Assembly: GCA_047495785.1 (NCBI GenBank)
Contig: JBLDXI010000013.1
Span: forward strand, 2,170,001-2,234,000
DNA: 64,000 nucleotides
Origin: Lepidodermella squamata
Taxonomy: Eukaryota > Animalia > Gastrotricha
Reading direction: 5' to 3'
In this document: positions 15,913 through 26,354 of the stretch, one piece after another
How positions within the stretch are numbered: position 1 is the first letter of the stretch
How the letters are laid out: the number at the start of each line of letters is the position of its first letter
Notes under the pieces: generated by a model
What the model saw: the letters and a program-made list of their open reading frames with translations, nothing else
What the model was told of the DNA's origin: nothing
Databases searched by the model: none
Translations under genes and position numbers: made by a program

Positions 15913-18110
15913 ATGTTACACACAACCCTATTGCTATTTGTTTGCCTGGAAACCGTAATATCGCATCCTTGGTTCACATCCTTACTTCCTAACGGCGATA
16001 AAGTGCCGCATCCTTGCAATAGAAATGAAACATGGTTAGGTGTAGGCCATCGTAGTTCAATTGGGGCGGGACCTTTCAACGTTTTCGGCCGAGATTTCGA
16101 TAAAAACGGCAAGAAATGGTCGAAGGCCTTGTGTGAATTAGACAGCGACGGCGATGGTCGTACTAACGGCCAAGAACTCGGCGATCCTAACTGCGTATGG
16201 ACTGATGGGGCGAAACCTAGCGTAACAGACCACTCGAAAATCAGTCACCCTGGTGTTTGCGAACCCTTAGACACCCCGGCTTGTCGGGAGAAGAACGCAT
16301 TCTTGATGGCTGACGAGCAATGCAACAAAGATATTAACAAAACCGATTGGTGCCCGGCTATCAATCGAAAGGGAGTGAAGCAACTCATCCTCCGCTTCAA
16401 TGAGACCAACGTACCTGCCAATGACACTTCCTACATGTGCCAGGAATACTCCTTACCTTCGGACGATGATTACGAAATTATTGCGGTAATTCCGTTTTTA
16501 TCATATAACGTAGTAAGGAGTAAATTTGGAAAAATTTAGAAAATCAGCTTTAGCTATAAAAAATCCTAAAATTTGAAGAAAATGTAGGCCATGCAGTTCC
16601 TGATTTTTTAGCAAGTTTTAAGAATTTTCTCATTTTTATCTGATTTTTTGCAATTTAAAATGTGATTGGACAATTAGTGGGTAATTTTGGACACTCATTT
16701 GCATATGAATATTGATCTAATTTTGACGCGATTTTTACGCTCGAGCTTATTAATTCCATATAATTATTTATTATCTATTTTCAGTGATATATTTAATGCT
16801 ATTTTTATATTCAGTGGGAACCTTTCATCACGAATGTGGAAATTATGCATCACTTGGTGGCCTATGTCTGCGATAAGCCTGATGAGATCCGACGTCTCCA
16901 AGCAATGAAAAATTTCTATAAAAACCCAGTTGTATGCGGAATGGTACCAGTCTGCACCAGCTACTCCCTGATTTGGGCTTTTGGAGTCCCTTCACGTTGC
17001 TACAGCGACGATGTCGCAGTTCCATTCGGCAAAAATTTCTACAACAAAACGATTCTGCAAATTCACTATAACAACCCTCTCCAACGGGACTACTATGTCG
17101 ACTCTTCTGGAATAGTTATATATTACCAGAAGAAACAACGACCTCAGAAAATTGGCACCTTCCTTGTTGGGAATAGCGATATCATCCTGCCGCCGAGAAC
17201 ACCTGTTTCCGTAGTAACAGCAACTGGCTTCAAAGACAACTGCAGCGCTGCTAGGCTGGGTAATAAGAAGTACAATTTAACTTCGATGCTGTTCCACATG
17301 CATAAAACCGGAAGTTATGGCAAGTTGATTTTAACGAAAAAATCCGGCAAGGTGATCACAATCCTCGACCGGTCTATCGACTACGACATGCCGGCGATGT
17401 TGGAGTTCAATGGGAAAAATTACCTGGAACTCGAGGGCGGCGATTCGTTGTCGGTTGAATGCCGTTACAACACCATGGACAGGTCGAAATGGACAACATT
17501 TGGCGAGAGTACCCAAGATGAGATGTGTATTGCGATTTTTGAGATAACGCCATTCATCAATAACCAACTGGCTGATAGTGCCCTCGATATCGGCCCGATC
17601 GATGCTTGCAGCCAGCGGAGCAATGTTATTGGAAATTGCTCGCGTTCTGAATTCAGGAATCTTTTGAACTACACCAAGGTTAACAATATGGGCAGTTTCG
17701 AAAAAGACTGCGGATGCTCTGGCATTTACCCTGTGCCCTCTTGCTCGAGTAAATGCTATGATTTCCTGAATAGGACTGGTTTTCTGAATATGAAACAGTG
17801 CTTGGAAGGTTCGGTTTTCTTTTTGACGGGGGCCGTAATGGATTGGACGCAGACGTTGGCGGTTAGAGCGCATGTTGAGCGATGCATCGCGCTGAAGGAA
17901 CCGCCGAAGAATGGGACCATGTGCACTGCGACAAGTCCTGCCTTGTTGGTTGAAATCCGCGGTAATGCACCTGCAGCTGCAGCAACGACTCAGAAGCCAG
18001 CAGCTCCAGTCGTTCAGGTTACGATGGCTGTAAAAGCTAATACGCAGTCTGGTAGTGTCATTACGGCTTCTGTGGTTCTCACAATTTTGGCAATTTTCCT
18101 TGCTTTTTAA
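15913..18110 (+). CDS. Temptin domain fused to copper type II ascorbate-dependent monooxygenase (DBH/TBH/MOXD1-like); exons 15913-16485, 16815-18110
   Basis: In-frame splice IIA|WEPF. CuH ligands MHHL and QIHY, CuM ligands FHMH and DEMC. Cys-rich C-terminal region and hydrophobic GPI-like tail; no DOMON domain. Confidence 0.9.
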
Positions 18111-18357: not shown

Positions 18358-19335
18358 AAATTTATTTATTTTATTTATTTAAGAGCTTAAGTCCGTAGCC
18401 GAACGCTCACAACAATGTTAATCGGGCAATCCACTCATAGCCGGCAGAAAAATCAGAGTCATATTCAGTCCGTTTCAAATTCCATTTGTTCATTTTGGTA
18501 GTGATAATACAAAACAACAACAACAATTGGCTCCACATTAACGTTAAAATTAGAGAGAATGAGATGTAAGGTAAGCTCATATAAAAAGTTTCTATTAAAA
18601 TTTACAATTTTTGGGACGCGTTTGAAAACTGGAATGGCGCATCGCCGAGAAGGTAAAGATATACATTTTGTCGACACTCATGCGCTGATTTCGATTCTTG
18701 TACGTGGCGAGGCAAAGCATTCCAAGCTACAGCTCCTTTGAAAGCGAGAGTTGATTGAGCACGTTTGCAAGTGAAAAATGGCACTTCCAAAGCTTGGTCG
18801 AAATAGCTGCGTAGGTTGCGTGGTTGTTCTTTCGATTTGAACATATCGCGCAAAGTTGTAGGCGCTTCTTGGTTCAAGCATTTCCAAACCATTGTGATGA
18901 TGTGCACTTTTCGCTTGCCCGCCATGTCAAGCCAACCCAGTTGATTTTGCATTTCGCTAGGGTCAGCCGTTCGGTCTTTTCGTAGGATGATGCGCATGAC
19001 TCTGTTTTGGACGGATTGAATAGCTTTTAGATTGCTGTCAGACGCCTGGTCCAAAACTGTGTCACAGTAGTTCAAGTGACTCAATACTACTGCGTTAGCC
19101 ATCGTGACCAAAGATTTCCTGTTCAAGTGTTTTGAAGCCATTTTAAGAGCGTAGGTACCTCGGTTCGCCTTAGCGCGAACTTCGCTGATGTGCGTTTTCA
19201 GGAGTAACGCATTGTCCAACGTTAACCCGAGAATTTTCATGGTCTTCGAATCTGCAAGTTTCACACCTTCGACTGTCACTTCGATGTTCGGTTTCTTTCT
19301 CTTGGTTGAGAGGACCAGTAGTTGAGACTTCTGGT
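18358..19335 (-). mobile_element. 5'-truncated L2/CR1-group LINE (C-terminal ORF2, 3' UTR and (TAAA)n tail)
   Basis: ORF 18602-19279 has KILGLTLD..L, VLSHLNYCD, IQSVQNRVMRIIL, QLGWL and G..AWNALP. (TTTA)n at ~18360-18380 forms the minus-strand tail. Confidence 0.85.
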
Positions 19336-20382: not shown

Positions 20383-21610
20383 CAAGCTGAAAGTTGAGAG
20401 ATCCTCGATGATGCGAAGATCTAGGTTAACAGTCTTGACGCTTCAGATACCCAACAAATTTTCGAAGCTTAAATTTAACCTGCGTCCCGCCCCAAGTCTG
20501 AAATTTCAGTCCACCTTAATCAAGGACCGAATCTCATCGCGATTTTGAGTTATTATTTAATTTTTTAATGTTAATTCTCGGCCTCTGCGAATTAACTTGA
20601 TATTATCAGCAGTGCTGTGTGTATTGAAACGTGTCACAAACGCGGATAAGGTCGCGTGAGCCTGCTTGAACGCGCAGACAAACACAGGTGCCGCGTGTTT
20701 TTGCGAGCGCATCACACTGTGCGTTGCGCGCGCGTGCGTTTTATTGCCCGTCATCATAGCAATTATTATTATCACGACCAGCAGCGGCGCCGTATAGGGC
20801 GGGGCATGCGTTATTTTCCACTTGTGCCGCGCGCAGAGGCGCTAAAAGAGTTTCCGCGGCCGAAAATAAACGCCGACGTGACATGTGTCCCCGCGCGTAG
20901 TTGACGGGTAAATAATTGTCAGGGTTATTATTAATGTTATAAATCCATAGTAATAGCTCAACCCCGTGTTAGCCTGTGTTTGATCAGAAGCCAAATAAAC
21001 GCCACTCCTTCAAAAACAGTATCGTCTTGTGTAGTATCTAGCTCTGAACTGAACGTGTCACATCTCGTTACAAGGGCAAGAGTCTTAGCCGCCACTTGTT
21101 GTTGTTGTTGTTCTTACAATTATTACCCGTAGACATACTACTAGCCGGCGCCGAGACGTATCGTGTATAGTCGAAACCTATAAAAACTGAATAATACATG
21201 GTTAGCCGCGCGCGGCTAAATCAAGCCGCGGGTCTTGTTCTTCTCATTTAGCGCGCGTGTCAATCATTATTGACGCGCTATTGTATCCATTTATTCGCCT
21301 CATGACCGACAATGCCCTTCCGTATTACTGCATCAGCTCACCTTAAACGCTTTAAATCGATAAAAATTATCTAAGATATTTAAACTCATCACCGGGGTCG
21401 AAAACTATATATATAGCCAGTCCTAATGTTATAAAAGTTTATCTTTCTTTCTATGATGCGAAAAAAATGTCCCTCGAGTGCAATCGCTCGAAATTATCAT
21501 TTTTATACGCATATTAGCATATAACAATTCCTTACATTTGCCGCCGGAAATTTTAGTTTTCTTGGATTTTTATGCTGCTATTATTATTGTTATAGCCTAG
21601 TTTCGAAAAA

Positions 21611-24600
21611 ATGCGATGCCACCGATGTGTGGTACTGCTGAATTGTTTACGCATATTTTTCGTCTCGTATCTGGCCGATGGTTTTCCAACTTATTTGAAG
21701 CTTATTCCAAACGGCGACAGGGTGCCTCATCCGTGTGATCGTAATTCAGCATGGCTTGGCGTCGGTCACCAGTTACCAGACGGTTCGGGCCGGCGAAATT
21801 CTTTCGGTGCAGATTTTCAACGATTAAACAAGTCTTGGACTCGAGAGCTATGCCGGCTAGACAGTGATGGTAATTAATTATACTTCCCCTTTCATTTTAA
21901 GTCTAGAGAATCAACCAAATTCGCTGCATCTCGATTATTTTTATTTTTGACAGCAATTTTTAAGATTTTTATGTTTGAATCGGCCGAAATTTATAAATGG
22001 GTGACCCTATTAACCATAACCCTGACCCAATCCTAATGTTAAACCTAACCCTAATCCTAACCCTAACCAGGAAAACCTCAAAAAATCATCGTGTAAAAGC
22101 AATGAACAAATGAACAAATGAACAAATGAAAATGTTTTATTTTACGTCCACCTTCAGCTAAAAGTGATGGTAATATATATATATACAAGCCTTACCCGTG
22201 AGGGTTTAGGGGACGGCTGACGACGAGAGATCAGCTTCAGGAACAGTCGCGAACAATCTGCTTTTTCCCATGAATTCATAATTTTCTATACTGTTACATA
22301 GTAGCTGCCATTCTTCCCGGTCTCTAGCTGTTACTTCCGCCAATTCTAAATCCGCAATTTTGTGAATTTCGATGCGTCGCATCAATAAGGTTGATTTACG
22401 GGGTCGCCCTCGTTTTTTAGGTTCATTAGGATCCCTGATACGTTTTTCATGTATATAAAAAATTCCGATTTTTAGAAGGCTTCTTCGGAGGCAGTCAGAC
22501 CATCGGGTTGGCGGCCTGCCGCGAGGCAAGTACCAACTCGGGTCGACTGCTTTCCAATAATACATAATACTCGTGAGACTTTCAGGGTCATATTCGTCCT
22601 GCCGAATTATATGGTGTAAAAGCAAGCTCAATTTAAAAAATTATTTAAAAATAGGTAAAATATACCACAAAATTATCTACAAATATTATGAAAATTTACT
22701 AAATCGCAAAAATGTGCAGAAATCATCTGCCCTAATTTAATTAAAAAAATCGAAATTTTCTGAATTAGCACACATTTTTCAATCTCCCTCTAGTCTCAAA
22801 TTAACCTACCTCAAATTAACCTTACGGTTACGGTCTTGAATTTTGGAATTCGAATATTGAAAATATGAATAATTCCTTTTTTTTAAGTTTCTCAGCGGCA
22901 GGAATCCTTAATTCTCTAATTTTATGATATATTCCAGGTGACGGAAGAACTAACGGCGAGGAGCTGGGTGATCCTAACTGTTCGTGGACTGTTGGCTCCA
23001 CCCCTAGTGTAACCAGCCGGGACTTGCTATCTCATCCTGGCGTGTGCGAGCCGACTGATTCGGCCACTTGTTTAGCTAAAAACCGATTCCTACTCACCCT
23101 GGATCCGTGCTTGAAAAACAAAACCAACGACTGGTGCCCGAGCGTTTCACGGCCATTTGTCCGCTCGATCACTCTACACCTCGACCCTGTTCATCTGCCC
23201 GACAGCGAATCATTCAAAATTTGCCAGATTTTCCCGATACCAAGCGATAATTCGTATCATGTAATCGCCTGGGAGCCGTTAGTTACCAACCCGGATTTAG
23301 TCCATAGTGTTACGCTATACGCATGTGACGAATCGAGCGATGAAGCAGCTGCGGCGCTGCAAAAATCGACAAACGCCTCAGAATGTCCGTTAGTACCAAC
23401 TTGCTCGTCGATAATCGCGATTTGGACATCAGGAGCTCCGCGGCGGTGTTTCAACGATCAAATCGGCCTGCCTATGGGCAAAAATTTCTATTCGACTGTG
23501 ATTTTACAAGTTCATTACCTTCGAACGTCGTTGACGAACAAAAAAGTTCGCGACTCTTCCGGCCTGAAGTTGCATTTTACGCCGGTTTTAAGGCCGACTG
23601 AAAAAGGCATGATTGCTGTAGGCCAAAGCGACATTCAACTGCCACCTCGGACTAAGCTGACTACAGCATTCGGAAAAGCATTTCAGGGCGATTGCAGCCG
23701 CCGTCAATTAGCGTCTCATTCATCGTATAAAATCACCTCGATTCATTTTTTAATGCACGAAGCCGGCAATTGGGGTCGATTGACAATCGCTAGAAATTCG
23801 ACCGGGAAACGGCTGACAATCATCGATGAAGCAATAAATTATTTGACGCCGAAATTCGTTGCTTTCAATGTTTCGAGTCAAATCACTATCGAGCCTGGTG
23901 ACGGTTTTGAGGTTGAATGCCGTTACGACACGTCGAAGCGCAGGAAGTGGACATTTTTCGGAGATTCATTCAAAACCGAGGAAAAATGTTTGGTGTACCT
24001 GGAAATCTACCCTAGACCCTCAAATCGTCTATTTCGAAATTTTGCTGACCTGGTAAATTAAGAGCAATTATCAATACCATTTGGAAGAATTTCTATTGAT
24101 TTTAGGGAGATCTGAGCTATTGTGCGAATCGTGAGGCTGTCATTGGAAACTGCTCTAAAAATACTGTTGGTGGAATTTTGGTCAACAGCGAAAAATCCCC
24201 AGAACAGGGCTTAATGGCCAGCTGTACATGCCACTCATATCCATCGACTGCCTGTTCCAGTAAATGCTATGGGTAAGTGAAATTCGTCTACACCATGTCC
24301 CACATTTTGGCAACTCTTTTCTGATTTTGCAACTTCTCGCTGGAAATTTATCCTTTTTTCAAATTGAACCGAGTAATGGGATTAATACTAGTGCTGGGAG
24401 CCTTTCCCAATCGTTTATTTTCTATCTCACCTGAAAAAATGATAAACCTCGGAAATCTCGGAAAACCCCCGAAAAACCCGATGGTTCGATTATTATCGGT
24501 ATTTTACTCGGTTGAATTAAATTTCTCCAGATTTTTTAAATTCATGTTGGTTAGCTTCCAAGTTTACCATTAACACTTCAACTGCCCGAACAAGGGGTCC

Positions 24601-25221
24601 AAGCTCCAGGATTTAGACCCAAATCGTATTTTTCCCTTAAGGAATTTGGAGACATGTATTTCCTTTGGTTGCGTTACATATGGGACACATTGTTACAAAA
24701 TTTTAAATAATTTTTCAAAATTGAAAAATTCGCGTGAATGAAATTGCTGGCCTATAACATCAATATTTTGAGCCTATAAAATCGGCATTAAATCTTCCTC
24801 AATGTTGGAAAATTAGGTGAAAATTATAAAAAGTTGTAATAATTTCATTTTTCGCAGGTTTCTATCTCGCGCCGGTTTGCTGCACAATCCTTGCCTGACA
24901 GGAGTCGCCATTCACTCGATAGCTCGCTACTGGCTGACAATGATGCCCGAACAGCTTTATTACCTTCAATCACAAACCGACCTCTGCTCGACCTTGAGTA
25001 AAAATTCAGCGCCCGCCAACGACACGGTTTGCTCCGAAGAAATCATGCGGCCTCTTCGCGATGACCCGTCTCGCTTCATCGAAGCCTCCGAACGAGGCAC
25101 ATCAGTTAACGCCGCTGACCACATTTTAAGTGGGTCTCTTAAAACCCTCTTGAGCTTTGTGACTATTATAGCTTTTCTTATGCTGACACGGCATACCATT
25201 CAAGTGCATCGAATACAATGA
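21611..25221 (+). CDS. Temptin + DBH-like monooxygenase paralog with substituted copper ligands; exons 21611-21869, 22938-24052, 24106-24272, 24858-25221
   Basis: All three GT-AG introns splice in frame (DSD-G|DG, ADL|GDL, CYG|FLS). Colinear with the 15913 gene, but has VHSV, FLMH and EEKC at the Cu-ligand sites. Confidence 0.85.
22010..22068 (+). repeat. Degenerate (CCCTAA)n-like repeat within intron
   Basis: taaccataaccctgacccaatcctaatgttaaacctaaccctaatcctaaccctaacc. Confidence 0.55.
22172..22631 (-). mobile_element. 3' fragment of RTE-clade LINE with (TA)n tail, in intron 1 of the 21611 gene
   Basis: Peptide PRGRPPTRWSD...ARDREEWQ is typical of the RTE ORF C-terminus; (TA)n at 22172-22185. 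Confidence 0.8.
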
Positions 25222-25651
25222 TTATCTCGAGCTTGCTTCTATAATTATAATATAGGTGAAAAAATGTTCGAATGTTTTTTTTTTTAATTTCTATCACAGC
25301 AATTTTATATTTCGTACGTAAAAATGTCGCTAAAAAATTCGAAAAAATTCTTCATTGTCTTGTTGAGAGAAATTTTAATGAAATTTAATAAAGATGGATT
25401 TTAAATAACAAATGATAATAATTTGCTTTCAAAAGAAGCCGAGTGTGAATTGTTGAATAGACAGTTTAACGTTTGCTTGGCGTTATTTTATGGGCATCTT
25501 TTATCCAAAGGTGTCAATGCCTTGAAACGGCTTTTTGATAAGATCACAAACATTGAATTTACCAAGGCTGAAACAGCGATAACTAACATAGCACAAAGAT
25601 AAAGTGAAACCTAAACTTTATTGTCTCTTGCAGTAAAGAAGGTCACATAAA

Positions 25652-26354
25652 ATGTTGTCATCTCTTAAAAAAATTGAAATTTTTTCCGCATTTCTTCTCC
25701 AATTTATCTCAATTAACGCTGCTCCCACAGCTTTGTTGCTCCAACCAGGTCGTAAGTTTCCCCATCATTTGTTAAGGAAGAATTTTTATCTTTTTATAAG
25801 GTCCATATGAAGGTCGAAAATCGGCATTTTGCGACGGTCAAATTTATGAGATTCATACGAACTTGTGCTGTGGAGGTAGAATCTACCCGGACAAAGCGTC
25901 GATTTATACATGCTGCGGGTCGATGCCTTGTTTAACGAACGTTGGCGTTCAGGTTTACCGAACACTTGGCAGGCATCACGCGGAAGCTGATCCGAACTTG
26001 ATACACCCTGCTCCTGTTCCTCAACCAGCCAGAATCTTCGTGCCGGCTACAGTCAATGTAATTCCTGTCATTCAAGAAAGCCAAATGGACTACTTATGGG
26101 CTCCTGATAATAATGAAGAAGCGTTATTAGGAATTAATTATGACGACAGAGGGCCCGACTATGAAAATGCGTTATCTGAGCAATCCTTAAATGATCAGTA
26201 TGACTCAGGAGATCGGCAAATGGACCCACCAGCACAAGTCGCCCAACCAAGGTCGGCAAGATATCGGAATCCTTACTTCGAAGCTAACAACGGACAACCG
26301 ATATTGTCTCATTTTATCTTTGGAAATCCAGGTTATGATCTCTCAGAAAGATAG
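25652..26354 (+). CDS. Small secreted protein with galaxin-like di-cysteine repeats; exons ~25652-25751, 25801-26354
   Basis: Hydrophobic leader ending INA-AP; FCDGQIY..NLCCGGRIY..TCCGSMPC; acidic D/N/Y-rich C-terminal part. Confidence 0.65.

Follow-up and report, generated by a model that had tools for sequence, protein, structure and literature searches.

What role is left to the fold of the DBH/PHM family, the classic example of an enzyme with two copper sites that are uncoupled, once the chemistry of these sites has become impossible? The question is made testable by a gene found in a stretch of 64,000 nucleotides from the gastrotrich Lepidodermella squamata (contig JBLDXI010000013.1, positions 2,170,001 to 2,234,000 of the forward strand), the whole of which is called here the window. 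This gene, named gene B (21611-25221 of the window, + strand), encodes a temptin domain followed by a core of the type found in the copper monooxygenases DBH and PHM, and lies downstream of an active-type paralog, gene A (15913-18110). The original prediction had presented gene B as a catalytically dead and conserved partner of gene A, acting as a binding protein, regulator or heterodimer subunit. According to the evidence presented below, gene B most likely derives from an enzyme whose catalysis it has lost, and is kept by strong selection.

Copper ligands, fold and domain layout of gene B

In DBH, the CuH site is formed by His262, His263 and His333, and the CuM site by His412, His414 and Met487 (PMC4846438). 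The equivalent columns of gene B were read, residue by residue, from an HMMER alignment to human DBH (4zel), with rat PHM also aligned, and the placement of the motifs is unambiguous in both alignments. The former HH pair of CuH is now His-Ser (23303-23308, + strand, as are all features of genes A and B given here), with the histidine at 23303-23305 and a serine at 23306-23308, where DBH has its second histidine. The third CuH ligand is still a histidine (23513-23515), and the family motif NNP that follows it is lost. In the former HxH motif of CuM, now Leu-Met-His (23750-23758), the first histidine of DBH is replaced by a leucine (23750-23752) and the second is kept (23756-23758), and a lysine occupies the position of the CuM methionine (23984-23986). 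Unlike DBH, gene B is left without the second CuH histidine, the first CuM histidine and the CuM methionine, that is, without three of the six copper ligands (HH>HS, HxH>LxH, Met>Lys), and these are the very losses that had been read from its motifs beforehand. The CuH columns read H, S and H in place of three histidines, and the CuM columns L, H and K in place of HxH plus methionine. Gene A, for which a full set had been predicted, presents HH, H, HxH and M in the same alignment, with all six ligands aligned.

The consequences of such changes can be judged from PHM, where every single-ligand variant retains at most ~5% of the activity and the H242A variant binds no CuM (PMC12164859). The changes in gene B are equivalent to those of PHM H108, H242 and M314 combined. 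Canonical hydroxylation by gene B can be excluded by inference because the oxygen-activating CuM site cannot form, and the encoded protein would lack what canonical two-copper chemistry requires. The description of gene B as catalytically dead is in this way supported for canonical chemistry, both by the loss of ligands and by the low activity of the PHM mutants. It had also been suggested that a nearby histidine, in the motif SIHF, could serve as a substitute ligand. This residue lies two residues ahead of the lost histidine, on the same strand, and is absent from both of the closest relatives (those on the metagenome contigs L001 and L072, described below), a lack of conservation that does not bear out the suggestion.

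Despite these losses, the body of the enzyme appears to be in place. Searches and folding were made exon by exon, and the entire core sits in exon 2, which matches the Pfam families Cu2_monooxygen (PF01082; E 1.8e-19, 70.6 bits) and Cu2_monoox_C (PF03712; E 5e-08, 33 bits), both above the cut-off. Exon 2 was modelled by AlphaFold2 at a mean pLDDT of 81, with ten-residue blocks of at least 87 across most of the core and values of 59-76 near residues 131-160. The top Foldseek matches of this model are DBH (4zel) and PHM, with probability 1.0 and TM-scores up to 0.76, and the sequence itself matches DBH with an E-value of 2.6e-19 and PHM with one of ~7e-09. The model shows gene B to keep the PHM-type two-sandwich fold, as predicted from its exon 2. 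Human DBH (4zel) and the rat PHM core (1phm, 1opm) have the same two-domain beta-sandwich core and the same disulfide cysteines, and all the core cysteines are kept in gene B. The differences from DBH extend beyond the ligands, since gene B carries a temptin domain in the position of the DOMON domain, and no similarity to the dimerization domain of DBH could be detected in its C-terminal region.

The complete product would consist of a signal peptide, a temptin domain, the two-domain core, a cysteine-rich region and a hydrophobic tail. The four-exon open frame originally described was confirmed, with 1905 coding nucleotides (634 codons plus the stop), no interruption throughout, and GT..AG borders in all introns. 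Exon 1 (21611-21869) includes the start codon, the signal peptide and the first two thirds of the temptin domain, and ends in phase 1 between the DSDG and DG of the calcium-loop motif. On its own, this exon matches the Pfam family Temptin_C (E 7.5e-21, 74.9 bits), and the domain has the calcium loop DSDGDG...GDP; no solved relative of it was found in the PDB. Exon 2 (22938-24052) holds the end of the temptin domain and the entire CuH-type and CuM-type core. It is followed by a mini-intron of 53 nt (24053-24105), at a position common to the relatives on contigs L001, L072 and L002. Exon 3 (24106-24272) encodes a cysteine-rich C-terminal region, and exon 4 (24858-25221) the remainder of this region, a hydrophobic stretch, 11 polar residues and the stop. 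Neither exon 3 nor exon 4 matches any Pfam family; the cysteine-rich region, which precedes the hydrophobic stretch, is common to the relatives.

Among the features that gene B was said to have retained, the N-terminal hydrophobic signal and the cysteines are present as described. The tail is also present but atypical, as its hydrophobic stretch of 13 residues is followed by 11 polar or basic ones (25100-25221). The tails of gene A and of the relatives on L001 and L072, of glycosylphosphatidylinositol (GPI) type, are instead hydrophobic to the end, and the membrane attachment of the gene B product may differ from theirs. Gene A shares the architecture of gene B with different intron positions. 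Its exon 1 (15913-16485) encodes the signal peptide, the temptin domain and the start of the core, and its exon 2 (16815-18110) the core with all six copper ligands, the cysteine-rich region and the GPI-type tail.

Selection on gene B and possible traces of its transcription

Since the protein is just 39-43% identical to its nearest relatives, synonymous sites are saturated at that distance, and the test for selection was based on two copies of the gene present in sequencing reads. The run X2 holds 93% of the words of the region and is probably the source sample. Its contigs include a second copy of gene B over 23563-24237, for which 26 coding differences are listed. All of them are synonymous except one, a change from alanine to threonine. 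Against a neutral expectation of 77% non-synonymous changes, a 25:1 split has a binomial P of ~2e-15, which, as a comparison of the two copies, shows gene B to be kept by purifying selection. A ratio of non-synonymous to synonymous change near one, which the original prediction had associated with a young pseudogene, is not what the two copies display.

One of the silent differences, TTA>TTG, falls in the leucine codon (23750-23752) that replaces the CuM histidine, and the "dead" state is therefore common to the two copies. X1, an independent run from 2015 whose RNA label is a guess, has the variant letters of the second copy as well, so that the two forms co-occur in two samples. The divergence of the second copy is patchy: it is identical to gene B over 22614-23592 and then differs by ~7.5% across 265 nt, almost always silently. 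A patchiness of this kind is what gene conversion, acting on diverged alleles or on homeologs, could leave behind.

The X1 contigs cover every exon bin of gene B, with exact matches at 21666-21733, 23483-23555 and 25055-25121. In the unique bins outside the exons (21400-21533, 21936-22069, 22740-22873 and 24616-24749), X1 depth is zero or near zero. Coverage restricted to exons fits mRNA and suggests that gene B is transcribed, albeit without a splice joint. A possible polyadenylation signal, AATAAA, is located at 25387-25392 on the + strand, and the X1 contig extends to 25339.

Relatives and recurrent ligand loss

A word-based protein search revealed that fusions of temptin and monooxygenase domains are common in molluscs and also occur in a brachiopod and a bryozoan, with 30-35% identity to gene B. 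They have received automatic names such as "DBH-like monooxygenase protein 2 homolog", "tyramine beta-hydroxylase-like" or "Temptin". Like gene B, these proteins consist of Temptin_C, Cu2_monooxygen and Cu2_monoox_C domains, a cysteine-rich region and a hydrophobic tail. Most of them keep the six ligands, and a clade apart from them unites gene B, its two relatives and gene A.

The only match from the lineage of gene B in this search was also the closest one, P0001, encoded on the metagenome contig L001. It is 39% identical to gene B and the product of a complete multi-exon gene, and its ligand columns (D,S / L / H,x,R / Y) have lost five of the six ligands. An exhaustive search added P0041 (metagenome contig L072) and the active-type P0040 (L073). 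P0041, which is 43% identical to gene B and has an intact multi-exon open reading frame (ORF), has lost all six ligands (D,F / G / Q,x,R / L). In its gene (L072:2744-4200), a start resembling a signal peptide is joined straight to the ligand-less core, with no temptin domain; two temptin-only genes are found downstream on the same contig (~4560-5920). A scan of JGI metagenomes with an alignment of gene B and P0001 yielded no closer relative.

In a maximum-likelihood tree built on the single-exon core, gene B, P0041 and P0001 form a clade with support 93/84, within which gene B groups with P0041 (97/87). This ligand-less clade is nested in a 100/100 clade with gene A, P0002 and P0040, all of them canonical. 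The branch of gene B (0.69) is not longer than that of gene A (0.82). The duplication that separated genes A and B is likely ancient rather than recent, judging from this topology. The second CuH histidine, the methionine and the NNP motif are gone in all three members of the ligand-less clade, and each member shows its own pattern of decay at the remaining ligands. Such a picture agrees with a single inactivation long ago, after which positions that had ceased to matter drifted while the fold remained constrained. The copper-less state is probably old, because the nearest relatives are also ligand-less and group with gene B. The conservation attributed to gene B in the original prediction is thus upheld from two sides, by the synonymous split between its two copies and by ligand-less relatives with intact ORFs.

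Across the family, the ligand columns are canonical (HHHHHM) in 125 of the 185 sequences, which makes the loss in gene B a real departure from the family. Most of the other sequences are truncated, and ~25-30 have replaced ligands, with column patterns such as GGIINV, HHLQHI or DQRHHM. Such ligand-deficient members are found in the bivalves Pinctada imbricata (KAK3101868), Mizuhopecten yessoensis (XP_021350307 and XP_021348982), Sinanodonta woodiana (KAL3870711 and KAL3870712), Mytilus galloprovincialis (VDI61739) and Argopecten irradians (XP_069108614), and in the tunicate Styela clava (XP_077973645). They belong to the same family as gene B and likewise have replaced ligand columns, but sit elsewhere in the tree, and their losses are independent of that in gene B because they are placed apart from its clade. 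In the present set they are the temptin-monooxygenase or DBH-like proteins P0118, P0105, P0086, P0045, P0020, P0032, P0128 and P0182, whose automatic names are enzyme-type or uninformative.

Among the papers searched, none was found to describe the temptin-monooxygenase fusion family, a copper-less member of it, or natural DBH/PHM-family proteins that lack the two copper sites. Sequence comparison supports gene B as a natural DBH-like protein devoid of copper sites and under selection, in an enzyme family already known. Many enzyme families include pseudoenzymes, and gene B is of use as a lead more than it is surprising. It offers a concrete case under selection, together with an apparently old copper-less sublineage and repeated ligand loss in the lophotrochozoan temptin-monooxygenase fusions.

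Possible roles of the product and gene neighbourhood

The product of gene B probably has a non-catalytic role outside the cell, in binding or scaffolding. It would be secreted or tethered to the membrane, and would still have its temptin domain as well as the disulfides and the two-sandwich fold of the copper monooxygenases of DBH/PHM type, while being unable to build the oxygen-activating CuM site, with two of the three CuH histidines left. Gene B would belong to an old sublineage that includes the two metagenome genes and whose ligands have decayed to differing degrees. Selection would have retained the secretory signal, the temptin domain with its calcium loop, the two-sandwich body with its cleft, the cysteine-rich region and the membrane-type tail. 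The interdomain cleft, which is retained, and the temptin domain with its calcium loop would serve to bind a ligand or a protein partner, either in secretions or on the surface of the cell, and an answer for gene B could hint at the substrate or partner of the active fusions.

A comparable logic is known from the carbonic anhydrase-related proteins CARP VIII, X and XI, and from the arthropod hexamerins and cryptocyanin derived from hemocyanin, in which a fold continued to be selected after the loss of its zinc or copper ligands. These proteins have also taken non-catalytic roles, although their folds and families are unrelated to those of gene B and serve as an analogy only. As for the temptin domain, temptin itself is a water-borne pheromone, a protein of Aplysia and Biomphalaria with a calcium-binding DSDxD loop, acting as an attractant and as the "glue" of a pheromone complex (PMC10075465). 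Temptin proper is a small free protein, whereas the temptin domain of gene B is joined to a large body derived from an enzyme.

Several points weigh against a non-catalytic binding role. The absence of activity is deduced from sequence, and gene B retains three ligand histidines, of which the two of CuH could hold Cu(I) to judge from PHM, so some copper binding is possible. To say that it binds the same ligand as the active members would name no ligand. The ligand-less clade is made up of just three sequences, of which two have long branches, and a forced sister grouping of genes A and B is disfavoured but not rejected (delta lnL 12.5, p-AU 0.085). On the side of expression, no reads across exon-exon joints of gene B were recovered in the run contigs, and the evidence for a transcript is weakened by the guessed RNA label of X1. 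As for the second copy, it could represent an allele, a homeolog or a close paralog, and purifying selection follows from the comparison whichever of the three it is.

The first of the alternatives, in which the site has been remodelled and gene B still encodes a copper protein or redox enzyme, is unlikely. Such a site could consist of one copper on the two CuH histidines, or on these plus the CuM histidine upon closure of the domains. Any two of the H-site histidines of PHM can hold Cu(I) (PMC12164859), and the closed conformation of DBH brings the copper sites to 4-5 A of each other (PMC4846438). Moreover, gene B has three of the ligand histidines left, the differences listed for the second copy include no non-synonymous one at these positions, and the branch of gene B is short when compared with those of its two relatives. 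However, these relatives have lost five and six of the six ligands, which leaves the lineage without a conserved metal site; the methionine has become a lysine, the NNP after the third CuH histidine is gone, and PHM ligand variants are nearly inactive (PMC12164859). The more specific form of this alternative, a mono-copper protein in which two CuH histidines and one CuM histidine hold a single copper across the closed domain interface, is very unlikely. If true, it would represent the conversion of a two-copper enzyme with long-range electron transfer into a single-site redox or copper-handling protein.

A role of gene B as a dedicated heterodimer subunit or regulator of gene A, as put forward in the original prediction, is quite unlikely. 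Both genes lie on the same strand, 3.5 kb apart, DBH itself forms dimers or tetramers (PMC4846438), and gene B keeps the cysteine-rich C-terminal region that it has in common with gene A. The genes are nevertheless not sisters in the best tree, even if their sister grouping is not rejected at the p-AU given above. No active monooxygenase gene adjoins the relatives on the available DNA of L001 and L072, and the relative on L072 is without any temptin domain. A comparison of gene order between the window and L001, L072 and L073 identified nothing except neighbouring temptin genes, of which the window has many. On its + strand, between 45 and 46700, there are ~14 temptin-domain coding regions, located near 45, 2352, 9395, 10811, 14845, 15895, 21629, 27412, 28438, 29683, 39722, 41755, 44633 and 46143, and two of the 14 carry a monooxygenase core. 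Given the separation of the two genes in the best tree, the lack of such a neighbour beside the relatives and this abundance of temptin genes, the adjacency of genes A and B is best seen as ordinary clustering. The proposed pairing of gene B with its active neighbour finds no support here, nor does a dedicated A-B heterodimer.

That gene B is a young pseudogene with a frame open by chance is scarcely credible: it has lost three catalytic residues, carries a retroelement fragment in intron 1 and yielded no spliced read, but the reading of a decaying gene is strongly disfavoured by the 25 synonymous differences to one non-synonymous between the copies, the intact splice sites and cysteines, the deep lineage with intact relatives and the exon-only coverage in X1, with its guessed label.

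The window as a whole is eukaryotic DNA with short introns. Just downstream of gene B, on the + strand, there is an ORF of 163 codons (25863-26354) with no Pfam match. Between genes A and B, on the minus strand, an ORF of 225 codons (18602-19279) resembles the C-terminal part of the reverse transcriptase of a non-long-terminal-repeat (non-LTR) retrotransposon, and no Pfam family matches it above the threshold. Within gene B, intron 1 (21870-22937, 1068 nt) contains a degenerate tract of CCCTAA repeats (~22011-22075) that adjoins a fragment of a high-copy retroelement (~22070-22740). This fragment is covered thousands of times in the source run and includes a minus-strand ORF (22206-22631) that ends in the retrotransposon-like motif R-P-x-x-R-W.

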